64,000 bases of DNA, taken from Octopus sinensis (Eukaryota). The translations under genes were made by a program, and so were the position numbers. Each line of letters opens with the position of its first letter. The first letter of the stretch is position 1. Shown in pieces: positions 1,681 through 44,499 of the stretch. The notes below the pieces were generated by a model, which was given only the letters and a program-made list of their open reading frames with translations, did not search any database and was not told the DNA's origin. The stretch lies in the NCBI RefSeq assembly GCF_006345805.1, contig NC_043026.1, positions 10,044,001 through 10,108,000 on the forward strand, given 5' to 3'.

Positions 1681-3090
1681 CTATCCTGTATGAATACGCT
1701 TGTGTCTAGTTAAGTTATGATTACGAGAGAATGATTTACCACAGATATCACAGTGATGCAGCTTCAGTACTGTATTAATACATTTGTGATTAATTAACTG
1801 ACTACTTTTAGAGAAAGTTTTACCGCAGACATCACAGTGATATGGCTTCTTCTTTGTATGAAGACGTTTGTGTGTAACCAAGCCAAACCTATCAGAGAAT
1901 GATTTACCACAGATCTCACAGTGATATGGTGTCTCTCCTGTATGAATATGCTTGTGTCTAGTTAACAAACTACTTACAGAGAATGATTTGCCACAGATAT
2001 CACAATGATATGGTTTCTCTACTGTATGAAAACGTTTGTGTATAGTTAAGTGATGATTACGAGAGAATGATTTACCACAGATATCACAACGATATGGCTT
2101 CTCACCTGTATGAATACGTATATGTGTAGTTAAGCAATAACTCTGAGAGAATGATGAACCACAGATATCACAATGATATGGTTTCTCTCCTGTATGAATA
2201 CGTTTGTGTTTCATCAAGTCACTACTTGCAGAGAAAGATGAACCACAAATATCACAATGATATGGTTTCTCTCCTGTATGAATACGTTTGTGTCTAGTTA
2301 AGGCACTATTCTGAGAGAATGATTTGCCACAGATATCACACTGGTATGGCTTCTCTCCAGTATGAATACGTTTGTGATTATTTAATGGACAACTTTCAGA
2401 GAATGATTTACCACAGATATCACAGTGATAAGGTTTGTCTCCTGTGTGAATATGTTTATGTATAGTTACATCATGATTACGAGAGAATGATTTACCACAG
2501 ATATCACACTGATAAGGCTTCTCTCCTGTATGAATATGCTTGTGAGTAGTTAAGTGATAACTCTGAGAAAATGATGAACCACAGATATCACAACAGTATG
2601 GCTTTTCTCCTGTATGAATTCGTTTGTGTTTCACTAAGTCACTATTTGAAGAGAATGATGAACCACAAATATCACAATGATACGGTTTCTCTCCTGTATG
2701 TGTACGTTTGTGTGGAGTTATGGCACTACGCTGAGAGAATGATTTACCACAGATATCACAATGATACGGTTTCTCTCCTGTATGTGTATGTTTGTGTCTA
2801 GCTATGGCACTACTGCAAGAGAATGATTTACCACAGACATCACAGTGATAAGGCTTTTTCTTTGTATGAAGACCTTCATGTGAAGTCAAGGCACTTTGGT
2901 CAGAGAATGATTTACCACAGATCTCACAGTGATATGGTTTTTCCCCTGTATGAATACGTCTGTGGGAAATTAGGTTACATTTTAGGGAGAAGACCTTTTT
3001 ACAAATGTCACAGTCATACGACAATTTTCTCATCTCTTTTATGTGTTCAGATGAAATCAGTTCTTCAATTTTTTCACTCTTTTCCATCAT
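1681..3090 (-). CDS. C2H2 zinc-finger protein ZF-1 (16 fingers, one degenerate), truncated by TAG in a linker
   Basis: 28-aa CxxC...HxxxH repeats with TGEKP linkers; first ATG at 3090 (MMEKSEK); the ORF track starts at an upstream TTG. Confidence 0.9.
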
Positions 3091-3679
3091 TTTCCCCTGC
3101 AAATCACAACGTATAAATTTTTCTTCCTTTTTATTCCTTACATAAACTTCTACTTTTCTATTTGTGCTCAGTGTTACTTTTGTCTAGCAACACTTAGATA
3201 CACTTATCCAAGTTTAATCAGCATACAAGCTCCTCTTCTTCATACTCCAGTCAGTGATGTCCAGAAATTTGGTTAATGATACCAGCTCAGAGTAAATGTT
3301 TTACAGGGCCTCTATCTCAGAATTGTAGAAACAATCTGATACATCTATTTTGTATAATATTTTCCTTTAGTCCTTAAAACGTGGTAGGTATTGAGGATGT
3401 TTCTTCTGTTATGCCAGTGTCATCTGATGTTCTGAAATGATAAAGAAAGAGCAGTGTAAGATGTAGAGGCGACAGATTCAGCTGGTATTTAACATAGGGG
3501 AGCAGATAGATGAACAATGGCAGGAAGTAAAGGAGAGAAAACCTTATCAGTACTCTATTAATATGCTCAATTAGAAAATAGGAGCTTGGTTAACAAGATA
3601 GATGTTGAGGTGTTATCAATGCATAGAACAGGCATAGCAATGAGACAGATCACAGAGCTCACAGATATAGCAACAGACA

Positions 3680-4150
3680 GGCTTTTTACACTATTTTTTC
3701 CCCCTTTTTTATGATCGGGTGTTAACATTGGGTTTTTGGATCCTGTGAGTTTGATCGTATGAATTTTCCGAGTCCTCTCCGCCCCACCATTTACCAGCGC
3801 ACCTTATCCGAGTTGGACCCCAACCCTCCGTCACAAAAAAAAAAAACAATAGTGTACTAGGCGTAAAATAATATGAAGAAAAAAATTGCACCGACGAAAG
3901 GGGAAGTGGCGAGAGGACTTGGAACATTCCCGATGTGAATTTTCCGAGTCGTCTCCTCACCCCTCCCGTTCGCTGGCGCGCATTTTTTTTTTCATATTCG
4001 TTTACCACATTTTTACACCTATTACACTATTTTTTTTCTTTTCATTTTTTTGCTCAAGTCAAACACTGAAGGTGAACCCTTTTTACTCCCTTTAATAAAT
4101 TGCTCTTTTTATCGAAATGCACTCAAATTACACGTATGTCCTCGGATAGA
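3680..4150. mobile_element. Old relic of a foldback-type DNA element in the ZF-1 upstream region (also at ~7497-7970, ~13517-13990, ~33837-34300)
   Basis: Shares sub-repeats (ttttacacctattacacta; gcgcgcattttttttcatattcgttt; gatgtgaattttccgag) with the TIRs at 14489-16414; absent upstream of ZF-4. Confidence 0.5.
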
Positions 4151-4177
4151 TTGTCGAGGATGAAGTCAGTCTGTGGT

Positions 4178-4336: not shown

Positions 4337-4611
4337 GAGTTTGGAAACCACTGATCTACATAATCTGAAAAGTATTTTCAGAAATTTCTATCTAAAGTTA
4401 TCCATTGTTAGTTATGAGAAAACAAATTGCTATCAGGGTGGGCGCACATCTCTAGTTATACCAAGAAACAAACGTTCGATAAAGGATTGGTTTCTGAACA
4501 TTTCAGCGGTTGGAATGTATTAGAAAATATTTCTCAAAATAAAACACAACAGAGGGTTAATGTTACAAACTAACATGGCAACAAGGGAGTGTGCAGAAGG
4601 TATCGTCCATT

Positions 4612-4870
4612 GCTAGAAATAGCAGCCAAACCACGCACGTATCATAGAATCTCTCTTCCATAGCTAGAAATAGCAGCCAAATCCCACACAAATGAGTGAC
4701 AGCTCTCTTTCATAGCTTGAAATAGCAGCCAAATCCCACACATATCAAGGACATCTCCCATTCATAGCTAGAAAGAGCAGCCAAATCCAGCACAAATCAA
4801 GGACATCTCCCATTCATAGCCAGAAATAGCAGCCAAATCCCGCACAAATCAAGGACATCTCCCATTCATA
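4612..4870. repeat. 52-bp minisatellite, ~5 units (upstream of ZF-1)
   Basis: tagctagaaatagcagccaaatc core recurring at ~52-bp spacing. Confidence 0.85.
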
Positions 4871-5653: not shown

Positions 5654-5897
5654 ATGAAAGAAAAAAGATGTTCAGAATGCTGGATGGTTGTAAAAATATA
5701 TATTTATTTACATATCCCATATTATTTCTTCATATAAGCGCTTTTAACGACTCTGAAACTAGATATATATATGTGTGTGTGTGTGTGGAGGTGAAATGTT
5801 AAAGGTACGTAACAAATAGGAAACTATTCTCTTGCTTTGTCTCCTGTAAAAATATTGTGTTTCATTAAAACACTATTTTGAGAGAATAATTTACCAG

Positions 5898-6905
5898 TCA
5901 TGAGTGATATGGATTCTCCTTTGTATGAAGATGTTTGTGTGAAGCCCAGGAACTACGGTCAGAAAATGATTTTCTACACATACCACAGTGATATGCTGTC
6001 TCTCCTACATGAATACGTTTGTGTTTAGTTAAGTTGTTCTTACGAGAGAAGGATTTACCACAGATATCACATCGATAAGGTTTGTCTCCTGTGTGAATAT
6101 GTTTATGTATAGTTACATCATGATTACGAGAGAATGATTTACCACAGATATCACACTGATAAGGCTTCTCTCCTGTATGAATAAGCCTGTGTGTAGTTAA
6201 GTGATAACTCTGAGAGAATGATAAACCACAGATATCACAACAGTATGGCTTTTCTCCTGTATGAAGACGTTTGTGTACAATTAAGGCACTTTGGTCAGAG
6301 AATGATTTACCACAGATCTCACAGTGATATGGTTTCTCTCCTGTATGAATACGCTTGTGTCTAGTTAACGAACTACTTACAGAGAATGATTTACCACAGA
6401 TATCACAATGATATGGTTTTTCATCTGTATGAAAATGTTTGTGTATGGTTAATTGATGATTACGAGAGAACGATTTACCACAGATACCACAACGATATGG
6501 CTTCTCACCTGTATGCGTACGTATGTGTGTAGTTAAGCAATAACTCTGAGAGAATGATGAACCACAGATATCACAATGATATGGTTTCTCTCCTGTATGA
6601 ATACGCTTGTGTGCAGATAAATTACAACTTTGAGAAAATGATTTACCACAGACATCACAGTGATAAGGCTTTTTCTTTGTATGAAGACCTTCATGTGAAG
6701 TCAAGGCACTTTGGTCAGAGAATGATTTACCACAGATCTCACAGTGATATGGTTTTTCCCCTGTATGAATACGTCTGTGGGAAATTAGGTTACATTTTAG
6801 GGAGAAGACCTTTTTACAAATGTCACAGTCATACGAGAAATTTTTCATCTCTTTTATGTGTTCAGATGAAATCAGTTCTTCAATTTTTTCACTCTTTTCC
6901 ATCAT
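5898..6905 (-). CDS. C2H2 zinc-finger protein ZF-2 (11 fingers; C-terminus ...KENPYHS)
   Basis: Intact ORF with tandem fingers; first ATG at 6905. Confidence 0.9.
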   Translation of the reverse strand: MMEKSEKIEELISSEHIKEMKNFSYDCDICKKVFSLKCNLISHRRIHTGEKPYHCEICGKSFSDQSALTSHEGLHTKKKPYHCDVCGKSFSQSCNLSAHKRIHTGEKPYHCDICGSSFSQSYCLTTHIRTHTGEKPYRCGICGKSFSRNHQLTIHKHFHTDEKPYHCDICGKSFSVSSSLTRHKRIHTGEKPYHCEICGKSFSDQSALIVHKRLHTGEKPYCCDICGLSFSQSYHLTTHRLIHTGEKPYQCDICGKSFSRNHDVTIHKHIHTGDKPYRCDICGKSFSRKNNLTKHKRIHVGETAYHCGMCRKSFSDRSSWASHKHLHTKENPYHS

Positions 6906-8274
6906 TTTCCCCTGCAAATCACAATGTATAAATTTTTCTTCCCTTTTATTCCTTACATAAACTTCTACTTTTCTATTTGTGCTCAGTGTTACTTTTGTCT
7001 AGCAACACTTAGATAGACTTATCCAAGTTTAATCAGCATACAAGCTCCTCTTCTTCATACTCCAGTCAGTGATGTTCAGAAACTTGGTTAATGATACCAG
7101 CTCAGAGTAAATGTTTTACAGGGCCTCTATCTCAGAATTGTAGAAACAATCTGATACATCTATTTTGTATAATATTTTCCTTTAGTCCTTAAAACGTGGT
7201 AGGTATTGAGGATGTTTCTTCTGTTATGCCAGTGTCATCTGATGTTCTGAAATGATATAGAAAGAGCAGTGTAAGATGTAGAGGCGACAGATTCAGCTGG
7301 TATTTAACATAGGGGAGCAGATAGATGAACAGGAAGTAAGGCAGGAAGTAAAGGCGAGAAAACCTTATCAGTACTCTATTAATATGCTCAATTAGAAAAT
7401 AGGAGCTTGGTTAACAAGATAGATGTTGAGGTGTTATCAATGCATAGAACAGGCATGACAATGAGACAGATCAGAGATCTCACAGATATAGCAACAGGCT
7501 TTTTACACTATTTTTCCCCCCTTTTTTATGATCGGGTGTTAACATTGGGTTTTTGGATCCTGTGAGTTTGATCGTATGAATTTTCCGAGTCCTCTCCGCC
7601 CCACCATTCACCAGCGCACCTTATCCGAGTTGGACCCCAACCCTCCGTCACAAAAAAAAAAAAAACAAAAGTGTACTACGCATGAAATAACATGAAGAAA
7701 AAAATTGCACCGACGAAAGGGGAAGTGGCGAGAGGACTTGGAACGTTCCCGATGTGAATTTTCCGAGTCGTCTCCTCACCCCTCCCGTTCGCCGGCGCGC
7801 ATTTTTTTTTCAGATTCGTTTACTACGTTTTTACACCTATTACACTATTTTTTTTTTCCATTTTTTTGCTCGAGTCAAACACTGAAGGTGAACCCTTTTT
7901 ATTCCCTTTAATAAATTGCTCTTTTTATTGAAATGCACTCAAAGTACACGTATGTCCACGGAGAGATTGTCGAGTTTGAAGTCAGTCTGTGGTGTAAAAG
8001 AGTTTGGAAACCACTGATCTACATAATCTGAAAAGTATTTTCAGAAATTTCTATCTAAAGTTATCCATTGTTAGTTATGAGAAAACAAATTGCTATCAGG
8101 GTGGGCGCACATCTCTAGTTATACCAAGAAACAAACGTTCGATAAAGGATTGGTTTCTGAACATTTCAGCGGTTGGAAGATATTAGAAAATATTTCTCAA
8201 AATAAAACACAACAGAAGGTTAATGTTACAAACTAACATGGCAACAAGGGAGTGTGCAGAAGGTATTGTCCATT

Positions 8275-8715
8275 GCTAGAAACGGCAGCCAAATCTCGAA
8301 AAAATCAGTGACAACTCTCTTTCATAGCTAGAAATAGCAGCCAAATCTCGAACAAATCAGTGATAACTCTCTTTCATAGCTAGAAATAGCAGCCAAATCT
8401 CGAACAAATCAGTGATAAGACTCTTTCATAGCTAGAAATAGCAGCCAAATCTCAAAAAAATCAGTGATAACTCTCTTTCAAAGCTAGAAATAGCAGCCAA
8501 ATCTCGAACAAATCAGTGACAGCTCTCTTTCATAGCTAGAAATAGCAGCCAAATCTCAAAAAAATCAGTGATAACTCTCTTTCAAAGCTAGAAATAGCAG
8601 CCAAATCCCGAACAAATCAGTGATAACTATCTTTCATAGCTAGAAATAGCAGCCAAATCTCTAACAAATCAGTGACAGCTCTCTTTCATAGCTAGAAATA
8701 GCAGCCAAATCTCGA
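8275..8715. repeat. 52-bp minisatellite, ~9 units (upstream of ZF-2)
   Basis: Unit atagctagaaatagcagccaaatctcgaacaaatcagtgataactctctttc. Confidence 0.9.
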
Positions 8716-8945
8716 AGCTGGAAGCGAAACAAATAATCGACAGGCGAAAAACCAAACGTCTACAGACTTAAAAACATTGAATAATTTCATTAATACTTAC
8801 GGAAATGTTTAACAAAGGATAGTGTTATGTATGTGTGTTTCTGGTAGTTGAGGAATGCATTATAAGACCGTATAATAAGCATTATCAGCTGATTTCAAAG
8901 AAATTCATGGATCAAGACATTTAATAAGATACCAAAATGCATTCA

Positions 8946-10748: not shown

Positions 10749-12929
10749 CTACCCTTTTCCTTTCTTCCCTATATGAATATATTTGTGCTTTGTTGAGCCT
10801 TTTTTGCCAGAGAATGATTTACCACAAATATCACAGTGATATGGCTTCTCTCCTGTATGAACATGTTTATGTGAAATTAAGGTACTATTTTGAGCGAATG
10901 ATTTACCACAGATATCACAGTGAAATGGCTTCTCTCCTGTATGAATACGTTTATGCGCAGTTAAGATACGATTCTCAGAGAATGATTCACCACAGATATT
11001 ACAATGATACGGTTTCTCTCCTGTATGAATACGTTTATGTTTAGTTAAGGTACTATTTTGAGAGAATGATTTACCACAGATATCACAATGATATGGTTTT
11101 TCTCCAGTATGAATATATCTGTGATTTGCTAAGCCACCTTTGTGAGAGAATGATTTACCACAGATATCACAGAGATAAGGTTTCCCTGGTCTATGAATAT
11201 GCTTATGTATAGTTAAGGCATGACTTTCAGAGAATGATTTGCCACAGATATCACAGTGATATGGTGTCTCTCCTGTATGAATACGCTTGTGTCTACTTAA
11301 CAATCTACTTTCAGAGAATGATTTACCACAGTTCTCACAGTGATACGGTTTCTCTCCTGTATGAATACGTTTGTGCGTAGTTAAAGCATTATTACGAGAG
11401 AATGATTTACCACAGATATCACAGTGATACGGTTTCTCTCCTGTATGAATACGCCTGTGATTAGTTAAGTGATAACTTTGAGAAAATGATGAACCACAGA
11501 TATCACAACGATATGGTTTCTCTCCTGTATGAATTCGTTTGTGTTGCACTAACTCACTATTTGAAGAGAATGATTTACCACAAATATCACAATGATATGG
11601 TTTCTCTCCTGTATGAATACGTTTGTGCGCAGTTAAATGATAGTTGTGAGAGAATGATTTGCCACAGATATCACAGTGATACGGCTTTTCTCTTGTATGA
11701 ATACGCTTGTGTCTAGTTAACACACTACTTACAGAGAATGATTTGCCACATATATCACAACGATATGGCTTCGCACCTGTATGAATACGTATGTGTGTAG
11801 TTAAGCAATAACTCCGAGAGAATGATGAACCACAGATGCTACAATGATATGGTTTCTCTCCTGTATGAATACGCTTGTGTCTAGTTAACACACTACTTAC
11901 AGTGTATGATTTGCCACAGATATCACAATGATATGGTTTTTCATCTGTATGAAAACGTTTGTGTATAGTTAATTGATGATTACTAGAGAACGATTTACCA
12001 CAGATATCACAACGATATGGCTTCTCACCGGTATGAGTACGTATGTGTGTAGTTAAGCAATAACTCCGAGAGAATGATGAACCACAGATGTTACAATGAT
12101 ATGGTTTCTCTCCTGTATGAATACGTTTGTGTATCATCAAGTCATTACTAGCAGAGAAATATGAACCACAAATATCACAATGATATGGTTTCTCTCCTGT
12201 ATGAATATACTTGTGTGCAGATAAATTACACCTTTGAGAAAATGATTTACCACAGACATCACAGTGATATGGCTTTTCTCCTGTATGAAGACGTTTGTGT
12301 ACAATTAAGGCACTTTGGTCAGAGAATGATTTACCACAGATCTCACATTGATATGGTGTCTCTCCTGTATGAATACGCTTGTGTCTAGTCAACACCCTAC
12401 TTACAGAGAATGATTTACCACAGATATCACAACGATATGGCTTCTCACCTGTATGAATACGTATATGTGTAGTTAAGCAATAACTCTGAGAGAATGATGA
12501 ACCACAGATATCACAATGATATGGTTTCTGTCCTGTATGAATACGCTTGTGTGCAGATAAATTACAACTTTGAGAAAATGATTTACCACAGACATCACAG
12601 TGATATGGTTGCTCTCCAGTATGAATACGCTTGTGTCTAGTTAACACACTACTTACAGAGAATGATTTACCACAGACATCACAGTGATATGGCTTTTTCT
12701 TTGTGTGAAGACCTTCATGTGAAGTCAAGGCACTTTGGTCGGAGAATGATTTACCACAGATCTCACACTGATATGGTTTTTTCCCTGTATGAATACGTCT
12801 GTGGGAAATTAGGTTACATTTTAGGGAGAAGACCTTTTTACAAATGTCACAGTCATACGACAATTTTCTCATCTCTTTTACGTGTTCAGATGAAATCAGT
12901 TCTTCAACTTTTTCACTCTTTTCCATCAT
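10749..12929 (-). CDS. C2H2 zinc-finger protein ZF-3 (25 fingers; C-terminus ...HIGKKGKG)
   Basis: Intact ORF; first ATG at 12929. Confidence 0.9.
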
Positions 12930-22629: not shown

Positions 22630-22642
22630 TATATATATAAAC

Positions 22643-22677
<35 letters not shown>

Positions 22678-22708: not shown

Positions 22709-22743
<35 letters not shown>

Positions 22744-24243: not shown

Positions 24244-24675
24244 TAGAAACATACTGTACTGTATATATTTTTTATTATTATTTTTATAATTTGTATATAT
24301 TTATTTTATTATAAATGCAACACAACACCCCAGAGGAATTGACATAAGCTTAAATAATAAACCGCCATAGGTGAACCCCGATATGGCAAGGGATTACAAT
24401 ATTTCTAGTCATGAAAAAGCCATAAAGTAAGTTATTGTATAACATATTTATCGAGTGAAGCATTTAAAAGATAAACAATGAACAAAATGTGAGGATGCGT
24501 AATTCAATAAAGAATCATGTGAAGGGTTGACAGGAGGAGGAAGAGTTTTGGTACAGAGTTCCTTACACCATGGAATAAAATGTGAAAATTACAAAAACAA
24601 AAAAAAATCTAAAAGTTTTGGAAACTTCCATTGTATAAATCAGAGGAATATTATAAATATATAGTAAACTAGAAA

Positions 24676-30398: not shown

Positions 30399-30581
30399 CT
30401 ACCCTTTTCCTTTCTTCCCTATATGAATATATTTGTGCTTTGTTAAGCCTTTTTTGCCAGAGAATGATTTACCACGAATATCACAGTGAAATGGCTTCTC
30501 TCCTGTATGAATACGTTTATGCGCAGTTAAGATACGATTATCAGAGAATGATTCACCACAGATATTACAATGATACAGTTT
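30399..30581 (-). pseudogene. Two fingers plus the ...HIGKKGKG tail downstream of the premature stop of ZF-5
   Basis: In frame (60 codons to the native TAG at 30399-30401); last finger has C->R (CDIRG). Confidence 0.8.
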
Positions 30582-33251
30582 CTATTCTGTATGAATACGT
30601 TTATGTTTAGTTAAGGTACTATTTTGAGAGAATGATTTACCACAGATATCACAATGATATGGTTTTTCTCCAGTATGAATATATCTGTGATTTGCTAAGC
30701 CACCTTTGTGAGAGAATGATTTACCACAGATATCACAGAGATAATGTTTCCTTGGTCTATGAATATGCTTATGTATAGTTAAGGCATGACTTTCAGAGAA
30801 TGATTTGCCACAGATATCACAGTGATATCGTGTCTCTCCTGTATGAATACGCTTGTGTCTACTTAACAATCTACTTTCAGAGAATGATTTACCACAGTTC
30901 TCACAGTGATACGGTTTCTCTCCTGTATGAATACGTTTGTGCGTAGTTAAAGCATTATTACGAGAGAATGATTTACCACAGATATCACAGTGATATGGTT
31001 TCTCTCCTGTATGAATATGCCTGTGATTAGTTAAGTGATAACTCTGAGAAAATGATAAACCACAGATATCACAACGATATGGTTTCTCTCCTGTATGAAT
31101 TCGTTTGTGTTGCACTAACTCACTATTTGAAGAGAATGATTTACCACAAATATCACAATGATATGGTTTCTCTCCTGTATGAATACGTTTGTGCGTAGTT
31201 AAATGATAGTTGTGAGAGAATGATTTGCCACAGATATCACAGTGATATGGCTTTTCTCTTGTATGAATACGCTTGTGTCTAGTTAACACACTACTTACAG
31301 AGAATGATTTACCGCAGACATCACAGTGATATGGCTTTTCTCCTGTATGAAAACGTTTGTGCGAAACAAAGGCACTTTGGTCAGAGAATGATTTACCACA
31401 GATCTCACAGTGATATGGTTTCTCTCCTGTATGAATACGCTTGTGTCTAGTTAACACACTACTTACAGAGAATGATTTGTCACAGATATCACAATGATAT
31501 GGTTTTTCATCTGTATGAAAACGTTTGTGTATAGTTAATTGATGATTACTAGAGAACGATTTACCACAGATATCACAACGATATGGCTTCTCACCTGTAT
31601 GAGTACGTAAGTGTGTAGTTAAGCAATAACTCCGAGAGAATGATGAACCACAGATGTTACAATGATATGGTTTCTCTCCTGTATGAATACGTTTGTGTCT
31701 CATCAAGTTATTACTTGCAGAGAAAGATGAACCACAAATATCACAATGATATGGTTTCTCCCCTGTATGAATACACTTGTGTGCAGATAAATTACAACTT
31801 TGAGAAAATGATTTACCACAGACATCACAGTGATATGGCTTTTCTCCTGTATGAAGACGTTTGTGTACAATTAAGGCACTTTGGTCAGAGAATGATTTAG
31901 CACAGATCTCACATTGATATGGTGTCTCTCCTGTATGAATACGCTTGTGTCTAGTTAACAACCTACTTACAGAGAATGATTTACCACAGATATCACAACG
32001 ATATGGCTTCTCACCTGTATGAATACGTATATGTGTAGTTAAGCAATAACTCCGAGAGAATGATGAACCACAGATGTTACAATGATATGGTTTCTCTCCT
32101 GTATGAATACGCTTGTGTGCAGATAAATCACAACTTTGAGAAAATGATTTACCACAGACATCACAGTGATATGGCTTTTCTCCTGTATGAATACGCTTGT
32201 GTCTAGTTAACACACAACTTGCAGAGAATGATTTGCCACAGACATCACAGTGATATGGCTTTTTCTTTGTGTGAAGACCTTCATGTGAAGTCAAGGCACT
32301 TTGGTCAGAGAATGATTTACCACAGATCTCACACTGATATGGTTTTTCCCCTGTATGAATACGTTTATGTATAGTTAAGGTACTATTTTGAGAGAATGAT
32401 TTACCACAGATATCACAACGATATGGCTTCTCTCCTGTATGAATATGCCTGTGATTATTTAAGGTAGAACTCTGAGAAAATGAGGAACCACAGATATCAC
32501 AACGATATGGTTTCTGTCCTGTATGAATTCGTTTGTGTTGCACTAACTCAGTATTTGAAGAGAATGATTTGCCACAAATATCACAATGATACGGTTTCTC
32601 TCCTGTATGTGTACGTTTGTGTCGAGTTATGGCACTAAGCTGAGAGAATGATTTATCACAGACATCACAGTGATATGGCTTTTCTCCTGTATGAATTCGT
32701 TTGTGTCTCACTAAGACAGTATTAAAAGAGAATGATTTACCACAGATCTCACAGTGATATGGTTTCTCTCCTGTATGAATACGCTTGTGTCTAGTTAACA
32801 CACTACTTGCAGAGAAAGATGAACCACAAATATCACAATGATATGGTTTCTCTCCTGTATGAATACGCTTGTGTGAAAACAGGGCACTCCTATCAGAGAA
32901 TGATTCACCACAGTTCTCACAGTGATATGGTTTCTCTCCTGTATGAATATGTTTGTGTGCAGATAAATTACAACTTTGAGAAAATGATTTACCACAGACA
33001 TCACAGTGATAAGGCTTTTTCTTTGTATGAAGACCTTCATGTGAAGTCAAGGCACTTTGGTCAGAGAATGATTTACCACAGATCTCACAGTGATATGGTT
33101 TTTCCCCTGTATGAATACGTCTGTGGGAAATTAGGTTACATTTTAGGGAGAAGACCTTTTTACAAATGTCACAGTCATACGACAATTTTCTCATCTCTTT
33201 TATGTGTTCAGATGAAATCAGTTCTTCAATTTTTTCACTCTTTTCCATCAT
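30582..33251 (-). CDS. C2H2 zinc-finger protein ZF-5 (31 fingers), truncated by TAG in a linker
   Basis: Long open finger array; first ATG at 33251. Confidence 0.9.
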
Positions 33252-34331
33252 TTTCCCCTGCAAATCACAATGTATAAATTTTTCTTCCTTTTTATTCCTT
33301 ACATAAACTCCTACTTTTCTATTTGTGCTAAGTGTTACTTTTGTCTAGCAACACTTAGATACACTTATCCAAGTTTAATCAGCATACAAGCTCCTCTTCT
33401 TCATACTCCAGTCTGTGATGTCCAGAAATTTTTTTAATGATACCAGCTCAGAGGAAATGTTTTACAGGGCACCTATCTCAGAATTGTAGAAACAATCTGA
33501 TACATCTATTTTGTATAATTTTGTCCTTTAGTCCTTAAAACGTGGTAGGTATTGAGGATGTTTCTTCTGTTATGCCAGTGTCATCTGATGTTCTGAAATG
33601 ATATAGAAAGAGCAGTGTAAGATGTAGAGGCGACAGATTCAGCTGGTATTTAACATAGGGGAGCAGATACATGAACAATGGCAGGAAGTAAAGGAGAGAA
33701 AACCTTATCAGTACTCAATTAATATGCTCAATTAGAAAATAGGAGCTTGGTTAACAAGATAGATGTTGAGGTGTTATCAATGCATAGAACAGGCATGACA
33801 ATGAGACAGATCACAGATCTCACGGATATAGCAACAGGCTTTTTACACTATTTTTTCCCCCTTTTTTATGATCGGGTGTTAACATTGGGTTTTTGGATCC
33901 TGTGAGTTTGATCGTATGAATTTTCCGAGTCCTCTCCGCCCCACCATTCACCAGCGCACCTTATCCGAGTTGGACCCCAACCCTCCGTCACAAAAAAAAA
34001 AAACAAAAGTGTACTACGCATGAAATAATATGAAGAAAAAAATTGCGCCGACAAATGTGTTAGTGGCGAGAGGACTTGGAACATTCCCGATGTGAATTTT
34101 CCGAGTCGTCTCCTCACCCCTCCCGTTCGCCGGCGCGCATTTTTTTTTCATTTTCGTTTACTACGTTTTTACACCTATTAAACTAATTTTTTTTTCCATT
34201 TTTTTGCTCGAGTCAAACACTGAAGGTGAACCCTTTTTACTCCCTTTAATAAATTGCTCGTTTTATCGAAATGCACTCAAGTTACACGTATGTCCTCGGA
34301 TAGATTGTCGAGGATGAAGTCAGTCTGTGGT

Positions 34332-34470
34332 CGTCATCATCATCGTGTAACGTCCGTTCTCCATGCTAGCATGGGTTGGGAAGCCAGAAGGCTGCACCAG
34401 GCTCCGGTCTTACCTGGCAATGTTTCTACAGCTGGATACCCATCCTAACACCAATCACTCCGGGAGTGTA
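34332..34470 (-). mobile_element. RTE LINE 3'-end fragment (same insertion as 4178-4336)
   Basis: Same junctions, with an internal deletion. Confidence 0.8.
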
Positions 34471-34794
34471 GAGTTTGGAAACCACTGATCTACATAATCT
34501 GAAAAGTACTTTCAGAAATTTCTATCTAAAGTTATCCATTGTTAGTTATGAGAAAACAAATTGCTATCAGGGTGGGCGCACATCTCTAGTTATACCAAGA
34601 AACAAACGTTCGATAAAGGATTGGTTTCTGAACATTTCAGCGGTTGGAATGTATTAGAAAATATTTCTCAAAATAAAACACAACAGAGGGTTAATGTCAC
34701 AAACTAACATGGCAACAAGGGAATGTGCAGAAGGTATTGTCCATTGCTAGAAATAGCAGCCAAATCACGCACGTATCATAGAATCTCTCTTCCA

Positions 34795-35892
34795 TAGCTA
34801 GAAATAGCAGCCAAATCCGGCACAAATCAAGGACATCTCCCATTCATAAAACGTAAGAAAAGACACAAAGAATCGACGCGCCAAAGACCGAAAGTCTACA
34901 GAATTAAAAACAATGAAAAATTTCTTTGCTTAATACTTACGGAAATGCTTCATAAAGGATAGTGTTGTTATATACGTGTGTGTCTGGCAGTTGAGAAACA
35001 CATCATAAATACGTATTGTAAGTATTATAAATGTATAAAAATCAGCTGATTCAAAGAAATTGACACACTGGACATTTCACCAAACATCAAAACCAATTAG
35101 GAAGCACCTTCAACGCGCATGCGTATTTCCTCTCTCAACTATTCAAGACAACAAAGTCTCATTATCTCCCTTTACGTTTCAGTATAGTACAGATTGTATA
35201 TATATATCTACATAAATATACATGTATATATATATACATATATATATTTATATTAATATTTTCTCTGTCTTTCTTTTTCTGGATCTTTCCTTCTCCTTGT
35301 TTCCGACGAAGAGCTCCGCTCGAAACGCTAATCCCTCCTTCTTTCCTTCTTTCCTGAGCTTCCAATAATAATATATTTGTTCCACGTCCTCGCGTTGTTG
35401 TCTTTTTTTGTGCTTTCTTGTTTGGATTAACTTTAACTATATAACGTATATATATATGCATATATACATGTATATGTGTATATATATATACATTCTGTAA
35501 AATACTGAAACGTAAAGGGAGATAATGAGACTTTGTTGTCTTGAATAGTTGAGAGAGGAAATACGCATGCGTGTTGAAGGTGCTTCCTAATTGGTTTTGA
35601 TGTTTGGTGAAATGTCCAGTGTGTCAATTTCTTTGAATCAGCTGATTTTTATACCTTTATAATACTTACAATACGTATTTATGATGTGTTTCTCAACTGC
35701 CAGACACACACGTATATAACAACACTATCCTTTATGAAGCATTTCCGTAAGTATTAAGCAAAGAAAATTTTCATTGTTTTTAATTCTGTAGACTTTCGGT
35801 CTTTGGCGCGTCGATTCTTTGTGTCTTTTCTTACGTTTTATGAATGGGAGATGTCCTTGATTTGTGCCGGATTTGGCTGCTATTTCAAGCTA
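34795..35892. repeat. Inverted repeat of the ZF upstream block (arms ~34795-35185 and ~35502-35892), head-to-head ZF-5/ZF-6
   Basis: ~390-bp arms are near-exact reverse complements; NRF1-like motifs at 35113-35124 and 35563-35572. Confidence 0.85.
35261..35432 (+). mobile_element. Short Penelope-like/retrozyme-like repeat with a hammerhead-like core (35299-35333)
   Basis: gtttCCGACGAagagctccgctcGAAAC; related copies at 53041 and 62772. Confidence 0.5.
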
Positions 35893-36160
35893 TGAAAGAG
35901 AGCTATCACTGATTTGTGCGGGATTTGGCTGCTATTTCTAGCTATGATTGGGAGATGTCCTTGATTTGTGCGTTATTTGGCTGCTATTTCTAGCTATGAA
36001 TGGGAGATGTTCTTGATTTGTGCGGGATTTGGCTGCTATTTCTAGCTATGAATGGGAGATGTTCTTGATTTGTGCGGGATTTGACTGCTATTTCTAGCTA
36101 TGGAAGTGAGTTGTCCCTGATTTGTGCGGGATTTGGCTGCTATTTCTAGCTATGGATGCT
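35860..36160. repeat. 52-bp minisatellite, ~6 units, inverted (upstream of ZF-6)
   Basis: tttggctgctatttctagcta core. Confidence 0.85.
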
Positions 36161-36366
36161 GCCTTCTACACTCGACGTTAGTTTGAGAAATATTCAGTTA
36201 ATGTTTACAGTATTCCCCAGAAACGGGGGGAAAAATAGTGCAATGGGTGTAAAAAAAAATGTTTAGGAAATGAATATGGAAAGAAAAATGCGCAGAAAGT
36301 AACGGAGGTGGTGGACTTCGGAAAATTCACAAGATCCGAGATGTTTGGGTCCTACTGAAGAACAGT

Positions 36367-37200
36367 GGCGCAGGAGTGGCTGTGTGTTAAGTAGTTCAAT
36401 CCCACTGCATGGCACCTTGGGCAAGTGTCTTCTACTATAGCCTCGGGACGACCAAAGCCTTGTGAGTGGATTTGGTAGACGGAAACTGAAAGAAGCCCGT
36501 CGTATATATGTATGTATATATATGCGTGTATGTGTTTGTGTGTCTGTGTTTGTCCCCCACAACATCGCTTTGCAACCGATGCTGGAGTGTTTATGTCCCC
36601 GTTACTTAGCTGTTTGGCAAAAAGAGACCGATACAATGAGTACTGGGCTTACAAAAGAATAAGTCCCGGGGTCGAGTTGCTCGATTAAAGGCGGTGCTCC
36701 AGCATGGCCGCAGTCAAATGACTGAAACAAGTAAAAGAGTAAAGAGTAAGAGAGTGGTCCAGGTGCGCTAGTCGACCTTTTGTGTTTCATTTACTTTGCT
36801 AGGTAGTCGTTGTAGGATCGACTAGTCACGACTAGCTATATCTTATATAAAATACATGTACAGAGTGGCTGTGTGGTAAGTAGCTTGCTTACCAATCACA
36901 TGGTTCCGGGTTCAGTCCCACTGCTGGGCACCTTGGGCAAGTGTCTTCTGCTATAGCCTCGGGCCGTCCAAAGCCTTGTGACTGGATTTGGTAGATGGAA
37001 ACTGAAAGAAGCCTGTCGTATATATATATAGGAGCATGAGTGGCTGTGTGGTAAGTAGCTTGGTTACCAACCACATGGTTCCGGGTTCAGTCCCACTGCG
37101 TGGCACCTTGGGCAAGTGTCTTCTACTATAGCCTCGGGCCGATCAAAACCTTGTGAGTGGATTTGGTAGACGGAAACTGAAAGAAGCCCGTCGTATATAT
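36367..37200 (+). mobile_element. SINE cluster: full-length copy 36367-36750 plus 5' halves at 36863-37030 and 37031-37200
   Basis: Three main-family heads in tandem, in the putative intron of ZF-6. Confidence 0.8.
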
Positions 37201-37714
37201 AGTAACAGTAGCAATGCAGTTTACCAGATTCTGTGATATTAAGTTTAATAAATTAAAATATTCTGTTGTTAAGTATTTCTACAGTTTATCTCAATAGAAA
37301 TGAATCTGTATTTTGTAAGTAGCCTCTACATCTTACACCGTTGTTTCTCTATAATTTCAGAACATCAGATGACATTGACATTACGGAAGAAACATCCTCA
37401 ATATCTACCATGTTTTAAAATCTAAAAGAAAATACTATACAAAGCAGATGTATGAGACTGTATTTTACAAATCTGTGGAAGAATTTCTGTGAAACATTTG
37501 CTCTGAAATATTATTAGCCAAACTTGTGAAAATCCCTGACCGGAGTGTGAAGAAGTGGAGCCTGTGTACTGATTAACGTTGGATAGATTTATGCAAGTGT
37601 TGCTAAAGAAAGGTAACACTAAACAGAGATAGAGCAGAAGAACTGTTTGTAAGGAATAAAGTACAAGAAGAAAAGGAAGTAGAATATATAAACTGGGATT
37701 TGAGTGGAAAAGTA

Positions 37715-39310
37715 ATGGAAAAGAGTGAGAAAAGTATAGGATTGATTTCCTCTGAACATGTGGTAAAAGAGAAGAGAAAATTGTCATATGACTGTAATAT
37801 CTGTAAAAAAGTCTTCTCTCTCAGATGTAACCTACTGTCCCACAAACGTATTCATGCAGGAGAGAAACCATTGCACTGTGATATCTGTGGTAAATCTTTC
37901 ACTTGCAGTAGTGACATAACTAGACACAAACATACCCATACAGGAGAGAAACCGTATCATTGTGAGGACTGTGGCAAGTCTTTCTCTGAAAATAGTACTT
38001 TGACGAAACACAAACGTATACATACAGGAGAGAAGCCATATCGATGTGATATCTGTGGTAAATCATTCTCTCAGAGTGGCCGCTTAACTAGTCATAAACA
38101 TATACATACAGGGGAGAAACCATATCACTGTGATATCTGTGGCAAATCATTCTCTCACAACCATGACTTAACTACACACAAACGTATTCATACAGGAGAA
38201 AAGTCATATCACTGTGATATCTGCGGCAAATCTTTCTCTGTAAGTAGTTTGTTAACTAAACACAGACGTATTCATACAGGAGAAAAACCATATCACTGTG
38301 AGATCTGTGGTAAATCATTCTCTGACAGTAGTGCCTTGGTTTCTCACACACGTCTTCATACAAAAGAGAAGCCATATCACTGTGATGTCTGCGGTAAATC
38401 ATTCTCTGAAAGCAATCATTTAACAAGACACATACATATCCATACAGGTGAGAAGCCGTATCACTGTGATATCTGTGACAAATCATTCTCTCACAACTAT
38501 CATTTAACTACACACAAACGTATTCATACAGGAGAGAAACCATATCATTGTGATATTTGTGGTAAATCATTCTCTTCAAGTAGTGACTTTGTGAAACACA
38601 AACGAATTCATACAGGAGAGAAACTATACTGTTGTGATATCTGTGGTTCATCATTTTCTCAGAGTTGTCACTTAACTAATCACAGGTATATTCATACAGG
38701 AGAGAAGCCATATGACTGTGATATCTGTGGTAAATCATTCTCTCGTAATAATGATTTAACTACGCACAAACGTATTCATACGGGAGAGAAACCGTATCAC
38801 TGTGAGATCTGTGGTAAATCATTCTCTAAAAGTAGTTTGTTAACTGGACACAAGCGTATTCATACAGGAGAGACAACATATCACTGTGATATCTGTGACA
38901 AATCATTCTCTCACAGCCATAATTTGACTATCCACAAACGTATTCATACAGGAGAGAAACCATATCTTTGTGATATTTGTGGTAAATCATTCTCTTCAAA
39001 TAGTGTCTTAGTGAAACACAATCGAATTCATACAGGAGAGAAACCATACCGTTGTGATATCTGTGGTTTATCATTTTCTCAGAGTTATCACTTAACTACT
39101 CACAGGCATATTCATACAGGAGAAAAACCATATCATTGTGATATCTGTGGTAAATCATTCTCTCGTAATAACAACTTAACTAAACACAAATGTATTCATG
39201 TAGGAGAGACAGCATATCACTGTGGTATGTGTAGAAAATCATTTTCTGACCGTAGTTCCTGGGCTTCACACAAACATCTTCATACAAAGGAGAATCCATA
39301 TCACTCATGA
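37715..39310 (+). CDS. C2H2 zinc-finger protein ZF-6 (18 fingers; N-terminus [11 protein letters not shown]-terminus ...KENPYHS)
   Basis: Intact ORF; first ATG at 37715. Confidence 0.9.
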   Translation: MEKSEKSIGLISSEHVVKEKRKLSYDCNICKKVFSLRCNLLSHKRIHAGEKPLHCDICGKSFTCSSDITRHKHTHTGEKPYHCEDCGKSFSENSTLTKHKRIHTGEKPYRCDICGKSFSQSGRLTSHKHIHTGEKPYHCDICGKSFSHNHDLTTHKRIHTGEKSYHCDICGKSFSVSSLLTKHRRIHTGEKPYHCEICGKSFSDSSALVSHTRLHTKEKPYHCDVCGKSFSESNHLTRHIHIHTGEKPYHCDICDKSFSHNYHLTTHKRIHTGEKPYHCDICGKSFSSSSDFVKHKRIHTGEKLYCCDICGSSFSQSCHLTNHRYIHTGEKPYDCDICGKSFSRNNDLTTHKRIHTGEKPYHCEICGKSFSKSSLLTGHKRIHTGETTYHCDICDKSFSHSHNLTIHKRIHTGEKPYLCDICGKSFSSNSVLVKHNRIHTGEKPYRCDICGLSFSQSYHLTTHRHIHTGEKPYHCDICGKSFSRNNNLTKHKCIHVGETAYHCGMCRKSFSDRSSWASHKHLHTKENPYHS

Positions 39311-39611
39311 CTGGTAAATTATTCTCTCAAAATAGTGTTTTAATGAAACACAATATTTATACAGGAGACAAAGCAAGAGAATTGTTTACTGTTTGTTACG
39401 TACCTTTAACATTGCACCTCCACACACACACACACACACATATATATGTAGTTTCAGAGTTGTTAAAAGCGCTTATATGAAGAAATAATATGGGATATGT
39501 AAATAAATATATATTTTTACAACCATCCAGCATTCTGAACACCTTTTTTCTTTCATATACATATATATATATGTGTGTGTATATATGTGTATGTATATAT
39601 GTGTGTGTATA

Positions 39612-40258: not shown

Positions 40259-40529
40259 GTTGAAGGTGCTTCCTAATTGGTTTTGATGTTTTGGTGAAAT
40301 GTCCAGTGTGTCAATTTCTTTGAATCAGCTGATTTTTATACCTTTATAATACTTACAATACGTATTTATGATGTGTTTCTCAACTGCCAGACACACACGT
40401 ATATAACAACACTATCCTTTATGAAGCATTTCCGTAAGTATTAAGCAAAGAAATTTTTCATTGTTTTTAATTCTGTAGACTTTCGGTCTTTGGCGCGTCG
40501 ATTCTTTGTGTCTTTTCTTACTTTTTATG

Positions 40530-40790
40530 AATGGGAGATGTCCTTGATTTGTGCGCGATTTGGCTGCTATTTCTGGCTATGAATGGGAAATGTTCTTGAT
40601 TTGTGCGGGATTTGGCTGCTATTTCTGGCTATGAATGGGAGATGTCCTGGATTTGGCTGCTATTTCTAGCTATGAATGGGAGATGTTCTTGATTTGTGCG
40701 GGATTTGGCTGCTCTTTCTAGGTATGAATGGGAGATGTCCTTGATTTGTGCGGGATTTGGCTGCTATTTCTAGCTATGGATGCTGTCTTC
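40530..40790. repeat. 52-bp minisatellite, ~5 units, inverted (upstream of ZF-7)
   Basis: Same core; one shortened unit. Confidence 0.85.
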
Positions 40791-40989: not shown

Positions 40990-41158
40990 GGCGCAGGAGT
41001 GGCTGTATGGTAAGTAGCTTGCTTACCAACCACATGGTTCCGGGTTCAGTCCCACTGCGTGGCACCTTGGGCAAGTGTCTTCTACTATAGCCTCGGGCCG
41101 ACCAAAGCCTTATGAGTGGATTTGGTAGACGGAAACTGAAAAAGCCTGTCGTATATAT
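40990..41158 (+). mobile_element. SINE 5' half in the putative intron of ZF-7
   Basis: Left flank matches the 36367 copy; right flank matches the 37031 copy. Confidence 0.8.
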
Positions 41159-41672
41159 AGTAACAGTAGCAATGCAGTTTACCAGATTCTGTGATATTAA
41201 GTTTAATAAATTAAAATATTCTGTTGTTAAGTATTTCTACAGTTTATCTCAATAGAAATGAATCTGTATTTTGTAAGTAGCCTCTACATCTTACACCGTT
41301 GTTTCTCTATAATTTCAGAACATCCGATGACATTGACATTACGGAAGAAACATCCTCAATATCTACCATGTTTTAAAATCTAAAAGAAAATACTATACAA
41401 AGCAGATGTATGAGACTGTATTTTACAAATCTGTGGAAGAATTTCTGTGAAACATTTGCTCTGAAATATTATTAGCCAAACTTGTGAAAATCCCTGACCG
41501 GAGTGTGAAGAAGTGGAGCCTGTGTACTGATTAACGTTGGATAGATTTATGCAAGTGTTGCTAAAGAAAGGTAACACTAAACAGAGATAGAGCAGAAGAA
41601 CTGTTTGTAAGGAATAAAGTACAAGAAGAAAAGGAAGTAGAATATATAAACTGGGATTTGAGTGGAAAAGTA

Positions 41673-43367
41673 ATGGAAAAGAGTGAGAAAAGTATAGGAT
41701 TGATTTCCTCTGAACATGTGGTAAAAGAGAAGAGAAAATTGTCATATGACTGTAATATCTGTAAAAAAGTCTTCTCTCTCAGATGTAACCTACTGTCCCA
41801 CAAACGTATTCATGCAGGAGAGAAACCATTGCACTGTGATATCTGTGGTAAATCTTTCACTTGCAGTAGTGACATAACTAGACACAAACGTACCCATACA
41901 GGAGAGAAACCGTATCATTGTGAGGACTGTGGCAAATCATTCTCTGAAAATAGTATTTTGACGAAACACAAACGTATACATACAGGAGAGAAGCCATATC
42001 GATGTGATATCTGTGGTAAATCATTCTCTCGAAGTAGTCACCTAAGTAGACACAAACATATTCATACTGGAGAGAAACCGTATCATTGTGATATCTGTGG
42101 TAAATCATTCTCTCAAAGTATTCATTTAACTACACACAAATACATTCATACAGGAGAAAAACCATATCATTGTGATGCCTGTGGTAAATCATTCTCTGTA
42201 AGAAGTTCATTAACTACACACAAATGTATTTATATAGGAGAAAAACCACATCATTGTAATATCTGTGGTAAATCATTCTATCAGAACAGTGAGTTAACTA
42301 GACACAAACGTATTCATACCGGAGAGAAACCATATCGTTGTGATATCTGTGGTAAATCATTCTCTCAGAGTGGCCACTTAACTAGTCATAAACGTATACA
42401 TACAGGGGAGAAACCATATCACTGTGATATCTGTGGCAAATCATTCTCTCACAACCATGACTTAACTACACACAAACGTATTCATACAGGAGAAAAACCA
42501 TATCATTGTGATATCTGTGGCAAATCATTCTCTGTAAGTAGTTTGTTAACTAAACACAGACGTATTCATACAGGAGAAAAACCATATCACTGTGAGATCT
42601 GTGGTAAATCATTCTCTGACAGTAGTGCCTTGGTTTCTCACAAACGTCTTCATACAAAAGAGAAGCCATATCACTGTGATGTCTGTAGTAAATCATTCTC
42701 TGAAAGCAGTCAGTTAACAAAACACAAACGTATCCATACAGGAGAGAAACCTTATCGTTGTGATATCTGTGGGACATCATTCTCCCAAAGTAGTCAGTTA
42801 ACTTCACACATACGTACTCATACAGGTGAGAAGCCATTTCGCTGTGATACCTGCGGTAAATTGTTCTCTTACAGTAGTGACTTAAGTAAGCATAAACACA
42901 TTCATGCAAGAGGGACAGCATCTCACTTAAGGGTTTGTGGTAAATCCTTGAAATGTAATTCAGTAACTAGTCAGAAACATACTCATGCCAGAGAGAAGCC
43001 CCATAACTGTGACGTCTGTGGTAAGTCATTCTCTGAAAGTAGTAATTTAACTGCACACAAACGGACCCATACAGGAGAGAGACCGTATCATTGTGAAATC
43101 TGTGGTAAATCATTTTCTCGGAATAGTCACTTAACTCGACACAAACGTGTTCATACAGGTGAGAAGCCATATCACTGTGATGTCTGTGGTAAATCATTCT
43201 CTGAAAGTAGACATTTGACTAAACACAAACGTATCCATACAGGAGAGAAACCATATCATTGTGGTATTTGTGGTACATCATTCTCTCAGAGTAGCCACTT
43301 GCCTGTACACAAAAGGATTCATCATACTGGAGAGAAGCCACTTCAGTCTGATGCTTCTTGTAAATAA
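41673..43367 (+). CDS. C2H2 zinc-finger protein ZF-7 (~19 fingers, 2 degenerate)
   Basis: ORF from ATG 41673; ends in a broken finger (QSDASCK*). Confidence 0.85.
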
Positions 43368-44499
43368 CTCATAAATGCATTCATACAGAGGAGAAGCTAT
43401 TTCGCTGTGATGCTTATGGTAAATCATTCTCTGAAAGTCACCACTTAGCTACTCAAACATATTCATGCAGGAGAGAAACTGTATCATTATCATGTCTGGT
43501 AAATCATTCTCTGTATAAAGTGCCTGTGCAAACACAAATGTATCCATGCAGGCTACATTAACTAGAAACAAATCTATGTATACAGGAGAGAAACCGTATC
43601 ACTGTAATGTCTGTGGTAAATCATTCTCTCAGAATTGTAACTTAAATGCACACAAATGTATACATACGGGAGATAAGCCATATCATAGTGATATCTGTGG
43701 TAAATCATTCTCTGAAAATAGCAAATTAACCAGACTTACATCTATTCATACAGGAGAGAAACCGTATCACTGTAATGTCTGTGGTAAATCATTCTCTCAA
43801 AATAGTAACTTAATGAAACACAAACATCTTCATTCAGGAGAGAAACCATTTCAGTGTGATATCTGCGGTAAATGTTTCTCTAGAAGTAGTATTGTTACTG
43901 CACACAAACGTACTCATACAGGAGAGAAACCATATCCCTGTGATATCTGTGGTAAATCATTCTCTGAAAGTAGTACATTAACTAGACACAAATCTATTCA
44001 CATGCCAGAGAAACCATACTATTGCGATATTTGTGGTAAATCATTCTCTAACAGTAGTCACTTATCTACACACACACGTATCCATACTGGAGAGAAACCA
44101 TATCATTGTGATATCTGTGGTAAATCATTCTCTCAAAATGGTGATGTTACAAAACACAAATATATTCATACAAGGGAGAAATCATATCTTTGTGATGTCT
44201 GTGGTAAATCATTCTCTAACAGTAGTCACTTATCAAGACACAAATGTCTTAATACAGGAGAGAAACCATACCATTGCAATATTTGTGGTAAATCATTCTC
44301 TGACAGTAGTCACTTATCAAGACACAAACGTCTTAATACAGGAGAGAAACCATATCATTGTGATAGTTGTGGTAAATCATTCTTTCAAAATTCTGGCTTA
44401 ACACAACATAAATATATTCATACAGCAAAGAAAGGAGAAAGGGTAGTTTCTTATTTGCTAGATACTTTTAATATTCCTGTTTTATACAATAGAAATTAA
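43368..44499 (+). pseudogene. Disrupted continuation of the ZF-7 array (frameshifted fingers, then ~10 fingers in ORF 43546-44499)
   Basis: Finger DNA continues through indels; several Zn ligands are lost; the 3' end resembles the KKGKG-type tail. Confidence 0.7.

Follow-up and report, generated by a model that had tools for sequence, protein, structure and literature searches.

A shared stock of finger units in eight neighbouring gene copies

How do neighbouring zinc finger (ZNF) genes come to carry the same fingers in different orders? The question is raised by 64,000 bp of Octopus sinensis DNA (RefSeq assembly GCF_006345805.1, contig NC_043026.1, positions 10,044,001 to 10,108,000 of the forward strand; this whole stretch is referred to as the window), an AT-rich, repeat-rich eukaryotic sequence with a G+C content of ~36%. 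The part analysed for the cluster spans positions 1681-44499, with arrays of C2H2 fingers between 1.5 and 44.5 kb. The comparison of all copies points, with good confidence, to a young tandem Krüppel-type poly-C2H2 cluster in which 84-bp units have been gained, lost and swapped between copies.

Eight C2H2 arrays were identified (Z1 to Z7 and a pseudogene, ps; Table 1), in which successive fingers are exactly 84 bp apart and at each of which Tandem Repeats Finder (TRF) calls an 84-bp array. At this spacing, the arrays contain 150 finger matches, and seven of the eight open with an ATG and an N-terminal peptide of 25-26 amino acids, with finger 1 directly after it. The fingers follow the pattern C-X2-C-X12-H-X3-H with TGEKPY-like linkers, at least five in tandem, and match the Pfam families zf-C2H2 and zf-H2C2_2 with E-values from 1e-60 to 1e-160. 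As in Krüppel-type poly-C2H2 genes, one-exon arrays are arranged as a tandem cluster, with single open reading frames (ORFs) of 335-889 codons and eight copies in 43 kb that have common 5′ and 3′ flanks. Delimited as parts of the cluster, the genes span 1681-3090 (Z1), 5898-6905 (Z2), 10749-12929 (Z3), 24676-26352 (Z4), 30582-33251 (Z5), 37715-39310 (Z6) and 41673-43367 (Z7), slightly less than most of the ORF coordinates in Table 1. Poly(A) signals are situated at conserved distances past the native stops. A possible splice acceptor (tttgcag followed by GGG) precedes the ATG in Z1-Z5 and is not kept in Z6 and Z7 (ttgag followed by TGG), while the upstream 200 bp are as conserved as the coding part, not less. 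The first-pass annotation had listed seven ORFs with 16, 11, 25, 19, 31, 18 and about 19 fingers, and these counts match exactly in a strict 84-bp register; its inventory had overlooked the eighth copy, the fingers past the stops of Z1 and Z5, the rear of the Z7 array and a 52-bp minisatellite.

Across the 134 translated fingers, the C, C, H and H residues are 100% conserved, the F is 99% conserved, and the linkers show 84-94% conservation of their residues. Helix positions -1, 3 and 6 accommodate 11-15 different residues, with 83 distinct helices of seven amino acids, in agreement with the earlier description of an invariant scaffold carrying variable recognition helices. When the 146 units of 84 bp were clustered at a nucleotide distance of 8%, 33 unit types with more than one member were obtained, covering 118 units, and their order varied by gene. 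The four finger-run parallels named beforehand all hold, at 97-98% at the DNA level and well beyond shuffled controls. Nucleotide identity amounts to 97.2% between units 4-12 of Z3 and 13-21 of Z5, 97.2% between units 3-8 of Z4 and 17-22 of Z5, 98.0% between units 14-23 of Z3 and 23-32 of Z5, and 97.6% between units 20-25 of Z3 and 14-19 of Z4. Altogether, 71 units lie in inter-gene collinear runs of at least three, the longest run being 10, compared with a mean of 0.5 units, a maximum of 7 and a longest run of 4 in 500 within-gene order shuffles. Unit pairs between genes at 92% identity or above mostly occupy different ordinal positions (164 of 196), and the order is more than a collinear series with gaps: D-E-F precedes G-H-I-J in Z1, and the equivalent of G-H-L-J precedes D-R-E-F in Z4.

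Fingers 1 and 2 are nearly fixed in Z1-Z5, with 96-100% nucleotide identity (2845-3012 in Z1 and the equivalents in Z2-Z5). Finger 2 of these genes bears an odd HEGLH sequence in its spacing region and a TKKKPY linker, and finger 1 is also kept in the O. sinensis protein XP_036366877.1. Fingers 1-2 and the N-terminal motif described below may form one conserved module, the head of Z1-Z5.

Exchange of heads, tails and units between copies

Regarding the flanks, the 800 bp on the 5′ side are 96-98% identical among Z1-Z5 and 98.4% identical between Z6 and Z7, and only 80% identical, over 380 bp, when the two groups are compared. The 3′ flanks are of type A in Z1, Z2, ps and Z6 (91-96% identical) and of type B in Z3, Z4 and Z5 (96-98% identical), the rear of the Z7 array being B-like at 85%. 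There are thus two head types and two tail types, and all four head-tail combinations therefore exist. Since head, interior-block and tail types are incongruent, the data require exchange of sequence between paralogues.

Z6 is the clearest mosaic of the cluster. Against Z1-Z5, its finger 1 shows 80-82% identity and its 5′ flank 80%, and its fingers 1-7 are common to Z7. Its fingers 9-13 are 92-98% identical to those of Z3 and Z5, its fingers 17-18 are 96-100% identical to those of Z2 and also ps-like, and in the 3′ flank it matches Z1 and Z2 at 91-96%. Because Z6 has the opposite orientation, this implies one of two events: gene conversion across copies that face opposite ways, or an inversion whose breakpoints fell within the arrays.

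Smaller and larger events were also found among the copies of like orientation. Unit 22 of Z5 shows no difference from unit 8 of Z4 and differs from unit 13 of Z3 at 27 of 84 sites, although it lies inside a run in which Z3 and Z5 are 97-98% identical. One unit, of type Y, is precisely deleted in Z5 relative to Z3 and Z4, and 20-21 of 22 aligned units are common to Z3 and Z5. The whole of Z5 reads A B K...D R. W and then B P K H...Z; that is, units 1-10 correspond to a near-whole array and units 11-33 to a Z3-like array from finger 2 onwards. Type W is a late-array unit, which in Z3 and Z4 stands four units from the array end; in Z5 the unit directly after it is a finger-2 unit with 99% identity to the second unit of Z3. 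Such an order would be the expected outcome of unequal exchange between neighbouring tandem genes.

Directly past the tail-A stop, a frameshifted finger remnant (GKLFSQNSVLMKHNIYTGDKA) is located at 5820-5903, 39305-39390, 23513-23596 and 1417-1500, which means that the array ancestral to the tail-A copies had one or more additional fingers.

Mosaics of this kind could in principle also be produced during assembly, if reads from nearly identical 84-bp repeats were collapsed or wrongly joined: different genes carry units with identities of up to 100%, and exact matches between copies reach 288 bp for most and 564 bp for the 5′ region of Z6 and Z7. Such an origin is very improbable. Divergence between shared blocks is a constant 2-5% and not 0%; register is perfect and the frame open in every array; copy-specific flanks, minisatellite lengths and insertions differ; and the same family architecture occurs at another O. 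sinensis locus, L001, in a chromosome assembly. Judged on these features, assembly error appears unlikely, and we retain exchange between paralogues as the source of the mosaics.

Table 1. Coordinates of the arrays, spacer and minisatellite blocks, with unit types in gene order
Feature	Position	Strand	Description	Unit types in order
Z1	1681-3102	-	ORF; head H1; 16 fingers	ABCD.EF..GHIJ..I..
Z1 remnant	1501-1680	-	Two more in-frame fingers past the premature stop; tail type A; last finger degraded	
Z2	5898-6917	-	Intact ORF; head H1; 11 fingers; tail A	ABKHLJM.FNO
Z3	10749-12956	-	Intact ORF; head H1; 25 fingers; tail B	ABJKHJMKGHLJHPQRESTUVWXYZ
ps	23597-24268	-	Pseudogene (eighth copy); 5′-truncated inside finger 2; 7 fingers; tail A	..J.E.NO
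Z4	24676-26364	-	Intact ORF; head H1; 19 fingers; tail B	ABK.HLJaDREF.UVWXYZ
Z5	30582-33263	-	ORF; head H1; 31 fingers	ABK...DR.WBPKHJMKGHLJaPQRESTUVWXZ
Z5 remnant	30402-30581	-	Two more in-frame fingers and native tail-B end past the premature stop	
Z5/Z6 head-to-head spacer	33264-37714	.	Between Z5 (-) and Z6 (+); both 5′ flanks and two minisatellite blocks; cluster orientation switches here	
Z6	37700-39310	+	Intact ORF; head H2; 18 fingers; tail A	bCcdefg.Q.EST.RENO
Z7	41658-43367	+	ORF; head H2; about 19 fingers	bCc....defg.......
Rear of Z7 array	43368-44499	+	About 3 frameshifted units, then a 10-unit ORF at 43546-44499	
52-bp minisatellite, upstream of Z1	4608-4870			
52-bp minisatellite, further window blocks	8271-8716, 14281-14440, 27185-28357, 34742-34848, 35839-36158, 40526-40782			
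52-bp minisatellite, blocks in L001	19576-19669, 21126-21194, 28203-28295, 33520-33662		Coordinates of locus L001	

Decay of individual copies

Several copies are decaying. Z1 is cut short by a nonsense codon (TG*KPY) that falls in the finger-16 linker, and its finger 15 has lost one His. The intact tail A ends, in Z2, with ...VGETAYH CGMCRKSFSDRSSWASHKHLHTKENPYHS*. Likewise, Z5 is closed by a nonsense codon inside a linker (HTE*KLY). In ps, His-to-Gln and His-to-Asn losses were found, and the junction at which this copy is fused to the 3′ flank of Z4 lies at about 24241. As for Z7, its ORF was scored as 17 canonical and 2 degenerate fingers and, unit by unit, as 19 units with three degenerate ones; unit 6 carries a His-to-Tyr change and units 14/15 a 3-nt deletion. 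Together with the downstream ORF it constitutes one 31-unit array (TRF 41799-44433), disrupted by the 3-nt deletion, by several frameshifts around 43340-43600 and by the loss of ligands. The downstream ORF itself shows C-to-S and H-to-N losses and has a B-like tail.

These defects could suggest that the copies are dispensable or dying genes in recombination-prone repeats and that the shuffling is a mere by-product of minisatellite instability. The premature stops in Z1 and Z5, the frameshifts of Z7 and the truncated pseudogene would fit this neutral account, as would the neutral rate at contact residues reported below and the minisatellite and microsatellites beside every copy. We nevertheless consider it quite doubtful, because the zinc ligands and core have non-synonymous to synonymous rate ratios (omega) of 0.04-0.10 and the linkers of 0.55-0.63 when recently diverged units are compared, frames of 335-889 codons have remained open despite the AT-rich composition, and conservation of the N-terminal motif and of finger 1 extends to O. 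sinensis.

Selection on the zinc fingers

Substitutions were counted on neighbour-joining trees with Fitch reconstruction and a pooled synonymous rate. Over the whole unit tree, omega was 0.50, with values of 0-0.09 for Cys, His and Phe, 0.33 for the scaffold and 1.29 for the contact positions -1, 2, 3 and 6. When the count was restricted to recent divergence within unit types and to still-translated units, omega was 0.04-0.05 for the ligands and core, 0.36-0.38 for the scaffold, 0.55-0.63 for the linkers and 1.13-1.21 for the contacts, with cluster-bootstrap intervals for the latter of 0.72-1.77 and 0.94-1.69. Wider ranges from the counts were 0.04-0.10 for Cys, His, Phe and Leu, 0.36-0.43 for the scaffold and 1.1-1.3 for the contact positions. 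Contact residues thus change about three times faster than the scaffold. The zinc ligands are under strong purifying selection and the contact residues are near neutrality. The clear maintenance of the fold means that the proteins are being produced and used, or were until recently. Positive selection at the contacts is not established, as the omega intervals include 1 and are indistinguishable from relaxed constraint; the excess of non-synonymous change for which the first-pass annotation had proposed a search is not absent, but an omega significantly above 1 was not reached. Locus L001, being about 78% identical to the window, is paralogous and was discarded as an orthologue for the selection test.

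These data bear on the proposal of an adaptive arms race, according to which selection favours new DNA-binding specificities that track transposable elements (TEs), as in KRAB-ZNF genes although with another effector or none. The faster change of the contact residues and the omega point estimate above 1 are in line with it, as is a neighbourhood that holds several satellites, part of a Helitron-type helicase and a reverse transcriptase of a long interspersed nuclear element (LINE). Genome-wide, TE consensus sequences are enriched in the motifs predicted for octopus ZNFs, and zebrafish FiNZ-ZNFs with a short acidic N-terminus of 28 amino acids repress TEs (PMC10547256). The contact omega is, however, not significantly above 1, no known repressor domain was found by Pfam, exchange often homogenises the copies, several copies are decaying, and the cephalopod C2H2 expansions are reported to be expressed mainly in the nervous system (PMC12513265). 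Taken together, an arms race is possible but unlikely as the explanation of this cluster.

Our preferred explanation remains birth-and-death evolution of a young cluster by exchange of finger units. The cluster would have grown by segmental duplication of units of a few kb, each composed of the 52-bp minisatellite, the 5′ flank and the gene, with one block in inverted orientation. Because each coding region is itself a minisatellite with an 84-bp period, gene conversion and misaligned homologous exchange would operate both inside arrays and from one paralogue to another. Such exchange would add, delete and replace whole fingers and multi-finger blocks in register, and would also join adjacent genes into one and trade heads and tails between copies. 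Selection preserves the zinc-binding fold while base-contacting residues drift at about the neutral rate, and copies die by nonsense mutation, frameshift or truncation. The anatomy of the cluster, its mosaic structure and this pattern of constraint are demonstrated by the sequence; beyond them, we infer that the proteins are sequence-specific DNA-binding regulators and that each new arrangement alters a long composite target site. Two considerations weigh against this explanation: three of the seven ORFs stop short of the arrays to which they belong, so that some of the genes may no longer be functional, and the constraint estimates pool all copies and are parsimony counts on a tree built from recombining units.

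The first-pass annotation had described the cluster as a recombination-driven generator of new specificities. The part that concerns recombination stands, given the in-register gain, loss and replacement of 84-bp units and the exchange between paralogues. Adaptive diversification is not supported: the contact omega intervals include 1, Z3 and Z5 are homogenised, three of the seven ORFs are truncated and one copy is dead. Much of the exchange makes the copies more alike.

The N-terminal motif and the effector question

In front of the fingers, the window genes carry a motif of 25 amino acids, MEKSEK..ELIS.EH.IKE....SYD, which the fingers follow directly. The pattern M-E-[KR]-S-[EK]-K-x2-E-[LF]-I-[ST]-x-E-[HQ]...S-Y-D is shared by the seven window genes. 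Their N-termini and finger 1 were combined into a profile and compared with 1.84 billion representatives, and among the 150 matches listed the motif occurs at residue 1 only in O. sinensis XP_036366877.1 and XP_036358517.1, two RefSeq models that both begin at the motif Met. The latter is encoded by L001, which harbours four motif-plus-array copies. The window genes belong to an octopod ZNF subfamily, defined here, that is marked by the MEKSEK N-terminal motif. The motif has a ratio of non-synonymous to synonymous differences per site (pN/pS) of 0.2-0.9 over few sites, indicating modest constraint. A single-sequence AlphaFold model of the N-terminus and two fingers proposed two short helices with a predicted local distance difference test (pLDDT) score of 56-61 over the motif, too weak to use. 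A protein word-index search with the N-terminus and four fingers retrieved ZNFs of many animals at only 50-62% identity, and the same search with the N-terminus and finger 1 gave no candidate in a collection from which the exact window proteins are also absent.

When considering known effector domains, Pfam (E≤0.01) detected no SCAN, BTB/POZ or ZAD in Z2, Z4, Z6 and XP_036366877.1, and only C2H2-type families in the first three. Nothing was detected in the same-strand ORF pieces of at least 45 amino acids upstream of Z3, Z5 and Z6. KRAB (PF01352) had no match in the proteins or in upstream ORF pieces of at least 45 amino acids, a short upstream exon being possible, and no SET domain was found by Pfam in spite of the 84-bp coding minisatellite. 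The earlier reading that the genes have no KRAB, SCAN, BTB or ZAD is in keeping with these searches of the proteins tested and upstream ORF pieces. Its term "effector-less" is apt for known domains but overlooks that the N-terminus is conserved in O. sinensis relatives; likewise, the peptide has the length of ~25 amino acids given for it, but it is a motif conserved in all seven genes and in those relatives rather than merely a charged stretch.

The 52-bp minisatellite and the surrounding repeats

Every ZNF gene is preceded, at a distance of 0.8-2 kb, by a 52-bp minisatellite of 3 to 22 copies, present once per duplicon and with an orientation that never varies with respect to the gene. It is also found 1.4-2 kb upstream of three of the four gene copies in L001. 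Its presence upstream of each copy indicates that the duplicated unit comprises the minisatellite, the 5′ flank and the gene. The minisatellite itself may be regulatory, a recombination substrate or TE-derived. A more far-reaching proposal would be that the motif and the near-invariant first finger or fingers form an octopod-specific accessory module, with a role likened to that of KRAB in tetrapods and FiNZ in cyprinids; that the cluster is a KRAB-independent repressor family whose targets are renewed mainly by cassette recombination and not by point substitution; and that the minisatellite is part of the regulation or of the duplication mechanism. As a whole, we regard this proposal as speculative and improbable.

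Other repeats surround the arrays. Just past the last array, a 112-bp satellite at 45496-46939 comprises 13 copies at 97% identity, also with periods of 220 and 332. Downstream of ps, the ORF 20836-22773 (-) of a non-long-terminal-repeat retrotransposon contains an RVT_1 domain and a PHD-like finger; the nearest relatives of this LINE reverse transcriptase in the database reach only 50-74% identity and belong to various marine invertebrates. An ORF at 16925-17443 (-), in the TE-rich gap of 11 kb that separates Z3 from ps, encodes a Pif1 2B helicase domain and is most probably what is left of a Helitron-type element. The proximity of this Pif1 fragment and of the satellites raised the idea that the ZNF gene is cargo of a Helitron-like element, which was rejected because the fragment lies outside the duplicons. 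Further away, an interspersed repeat at 61861-62723 is 90% identical to L001 41483-42339, the closest non-genic match found. G+C-rich tandem repeats at 19847-20376 and 61845-62024, with 61-67 bp and double-length variants, have the common core GGTGCTTTT(T)ACGTGCCACCGGCAC and probably lie inside the members of a single TE family. Neither Rfam nor ARAGORN gave a match in the window, and no head of a short interspersed nuclear element derived from transfer RNA could be named.

Comparison with known systems

PRDM9 is a single locus with allelic turnover, in which a PR/SET domain precedes an 84-bp finger minisatellite. The octopus genes resemble it in their 84-bp coding minisatellite and in the in-register unequal exchange and conversion; they differ in having no PR/SET, KRAB or SSXRD and in forming a multi-gene cluster with exchange between paralogues. 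To our knowledge, the ZNF expansions of cephalopods have no known effector yet.

Octopus and squid have large lineage-specific C2H2 expansions with nervous-system expression (PMC12513265), and the targeting of TEs by octopus ZNFs without KRAB is a published hypothesis derived from motif predictions (PMC10547256). Our cluster is similar to these expansions in its octopod-type ZNFs, tandem arrangement and repeat-rich DNA, as far as they are presented in PMC12513265 and, for the 2015 octopus genome paper, as relayed in PMC10547256. In contrast to the approach taken here, the published treatment proceeds by gene trees and expression (PMC12513265, PMC10547256). Within the cephalopod ZNF literature covered, to which the 2015 genome paper does not belong, we did not find a description of a unit-level mosaic map, the N-terminal motif or the travelling 52-bp minisatellite; the last two are smaller leads for research on these expansions.

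In cyprinids, FiNZ is a Glu-rich N-terminal sequence of 28 amino acids and the sole accessory part of a TE-repressing ZNF family, whose genes show positive selection and, upon knock-down, TE de-repression (PMC10547256). Similar to the FiNZ-ZNFs described by Wells et al. in 2023 (PMC10547256), the octopus genes are poly-zinc-finger genes of the kind present in hundreds of copies, with a short Glu-rich N-terminus before the fingers (28 versus 25 amino acids). The resemblance is limited to length, position and Glu richness, and since FiNZ is restricted to cyprinid fish, the octopod-like taxon is not expected to have members of that family.

A close parallel in mode of evolution is offered by the young vertebrate clusters of the KRAB-ZNF type analysed by Emerson and Thomas in 2009, in which paralogues differ mainly by the gain or loss of whole fingers, change is centred on positions -1, 3 and 6, and gene conversion occurs (PMC2604467). 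Both systems are composed of young tandem paralogues with one-exon arrays and TGEKPY linkers, and both display whole-finger duplication and deletion, some conversion, variable positions -1, 3 and 6, and frequent pseudogenes. Unlike the vertebrate clusters, that of the octopus carries no KRAB, SCAN or BTB, its positive selection at contacts is not significant, and its sharing of blocks at shifted positions is unusually extensive given the low divergence of the flanks. Finger gain, loss and conversion, the octopus C2H2 expansions and the idea of TE targeting have all been published already, and the cluster is a clear example of the ordinary mode. Its value lies in being an unusually readable snapshot of poly-zinc-finger diversification, with flanks 2-4% apart and arrays of 11 to 33 units, in which a gene fusion, a head-tail swap and the replacement of a single cassette are all visible in one cluster. 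It supports the idea that in young clusters the rearrangement of fingers alters binding sites more than point mutation of contact residues does, and it leaves the general picture drawn from vertebrate ZNF clusters unchanged.

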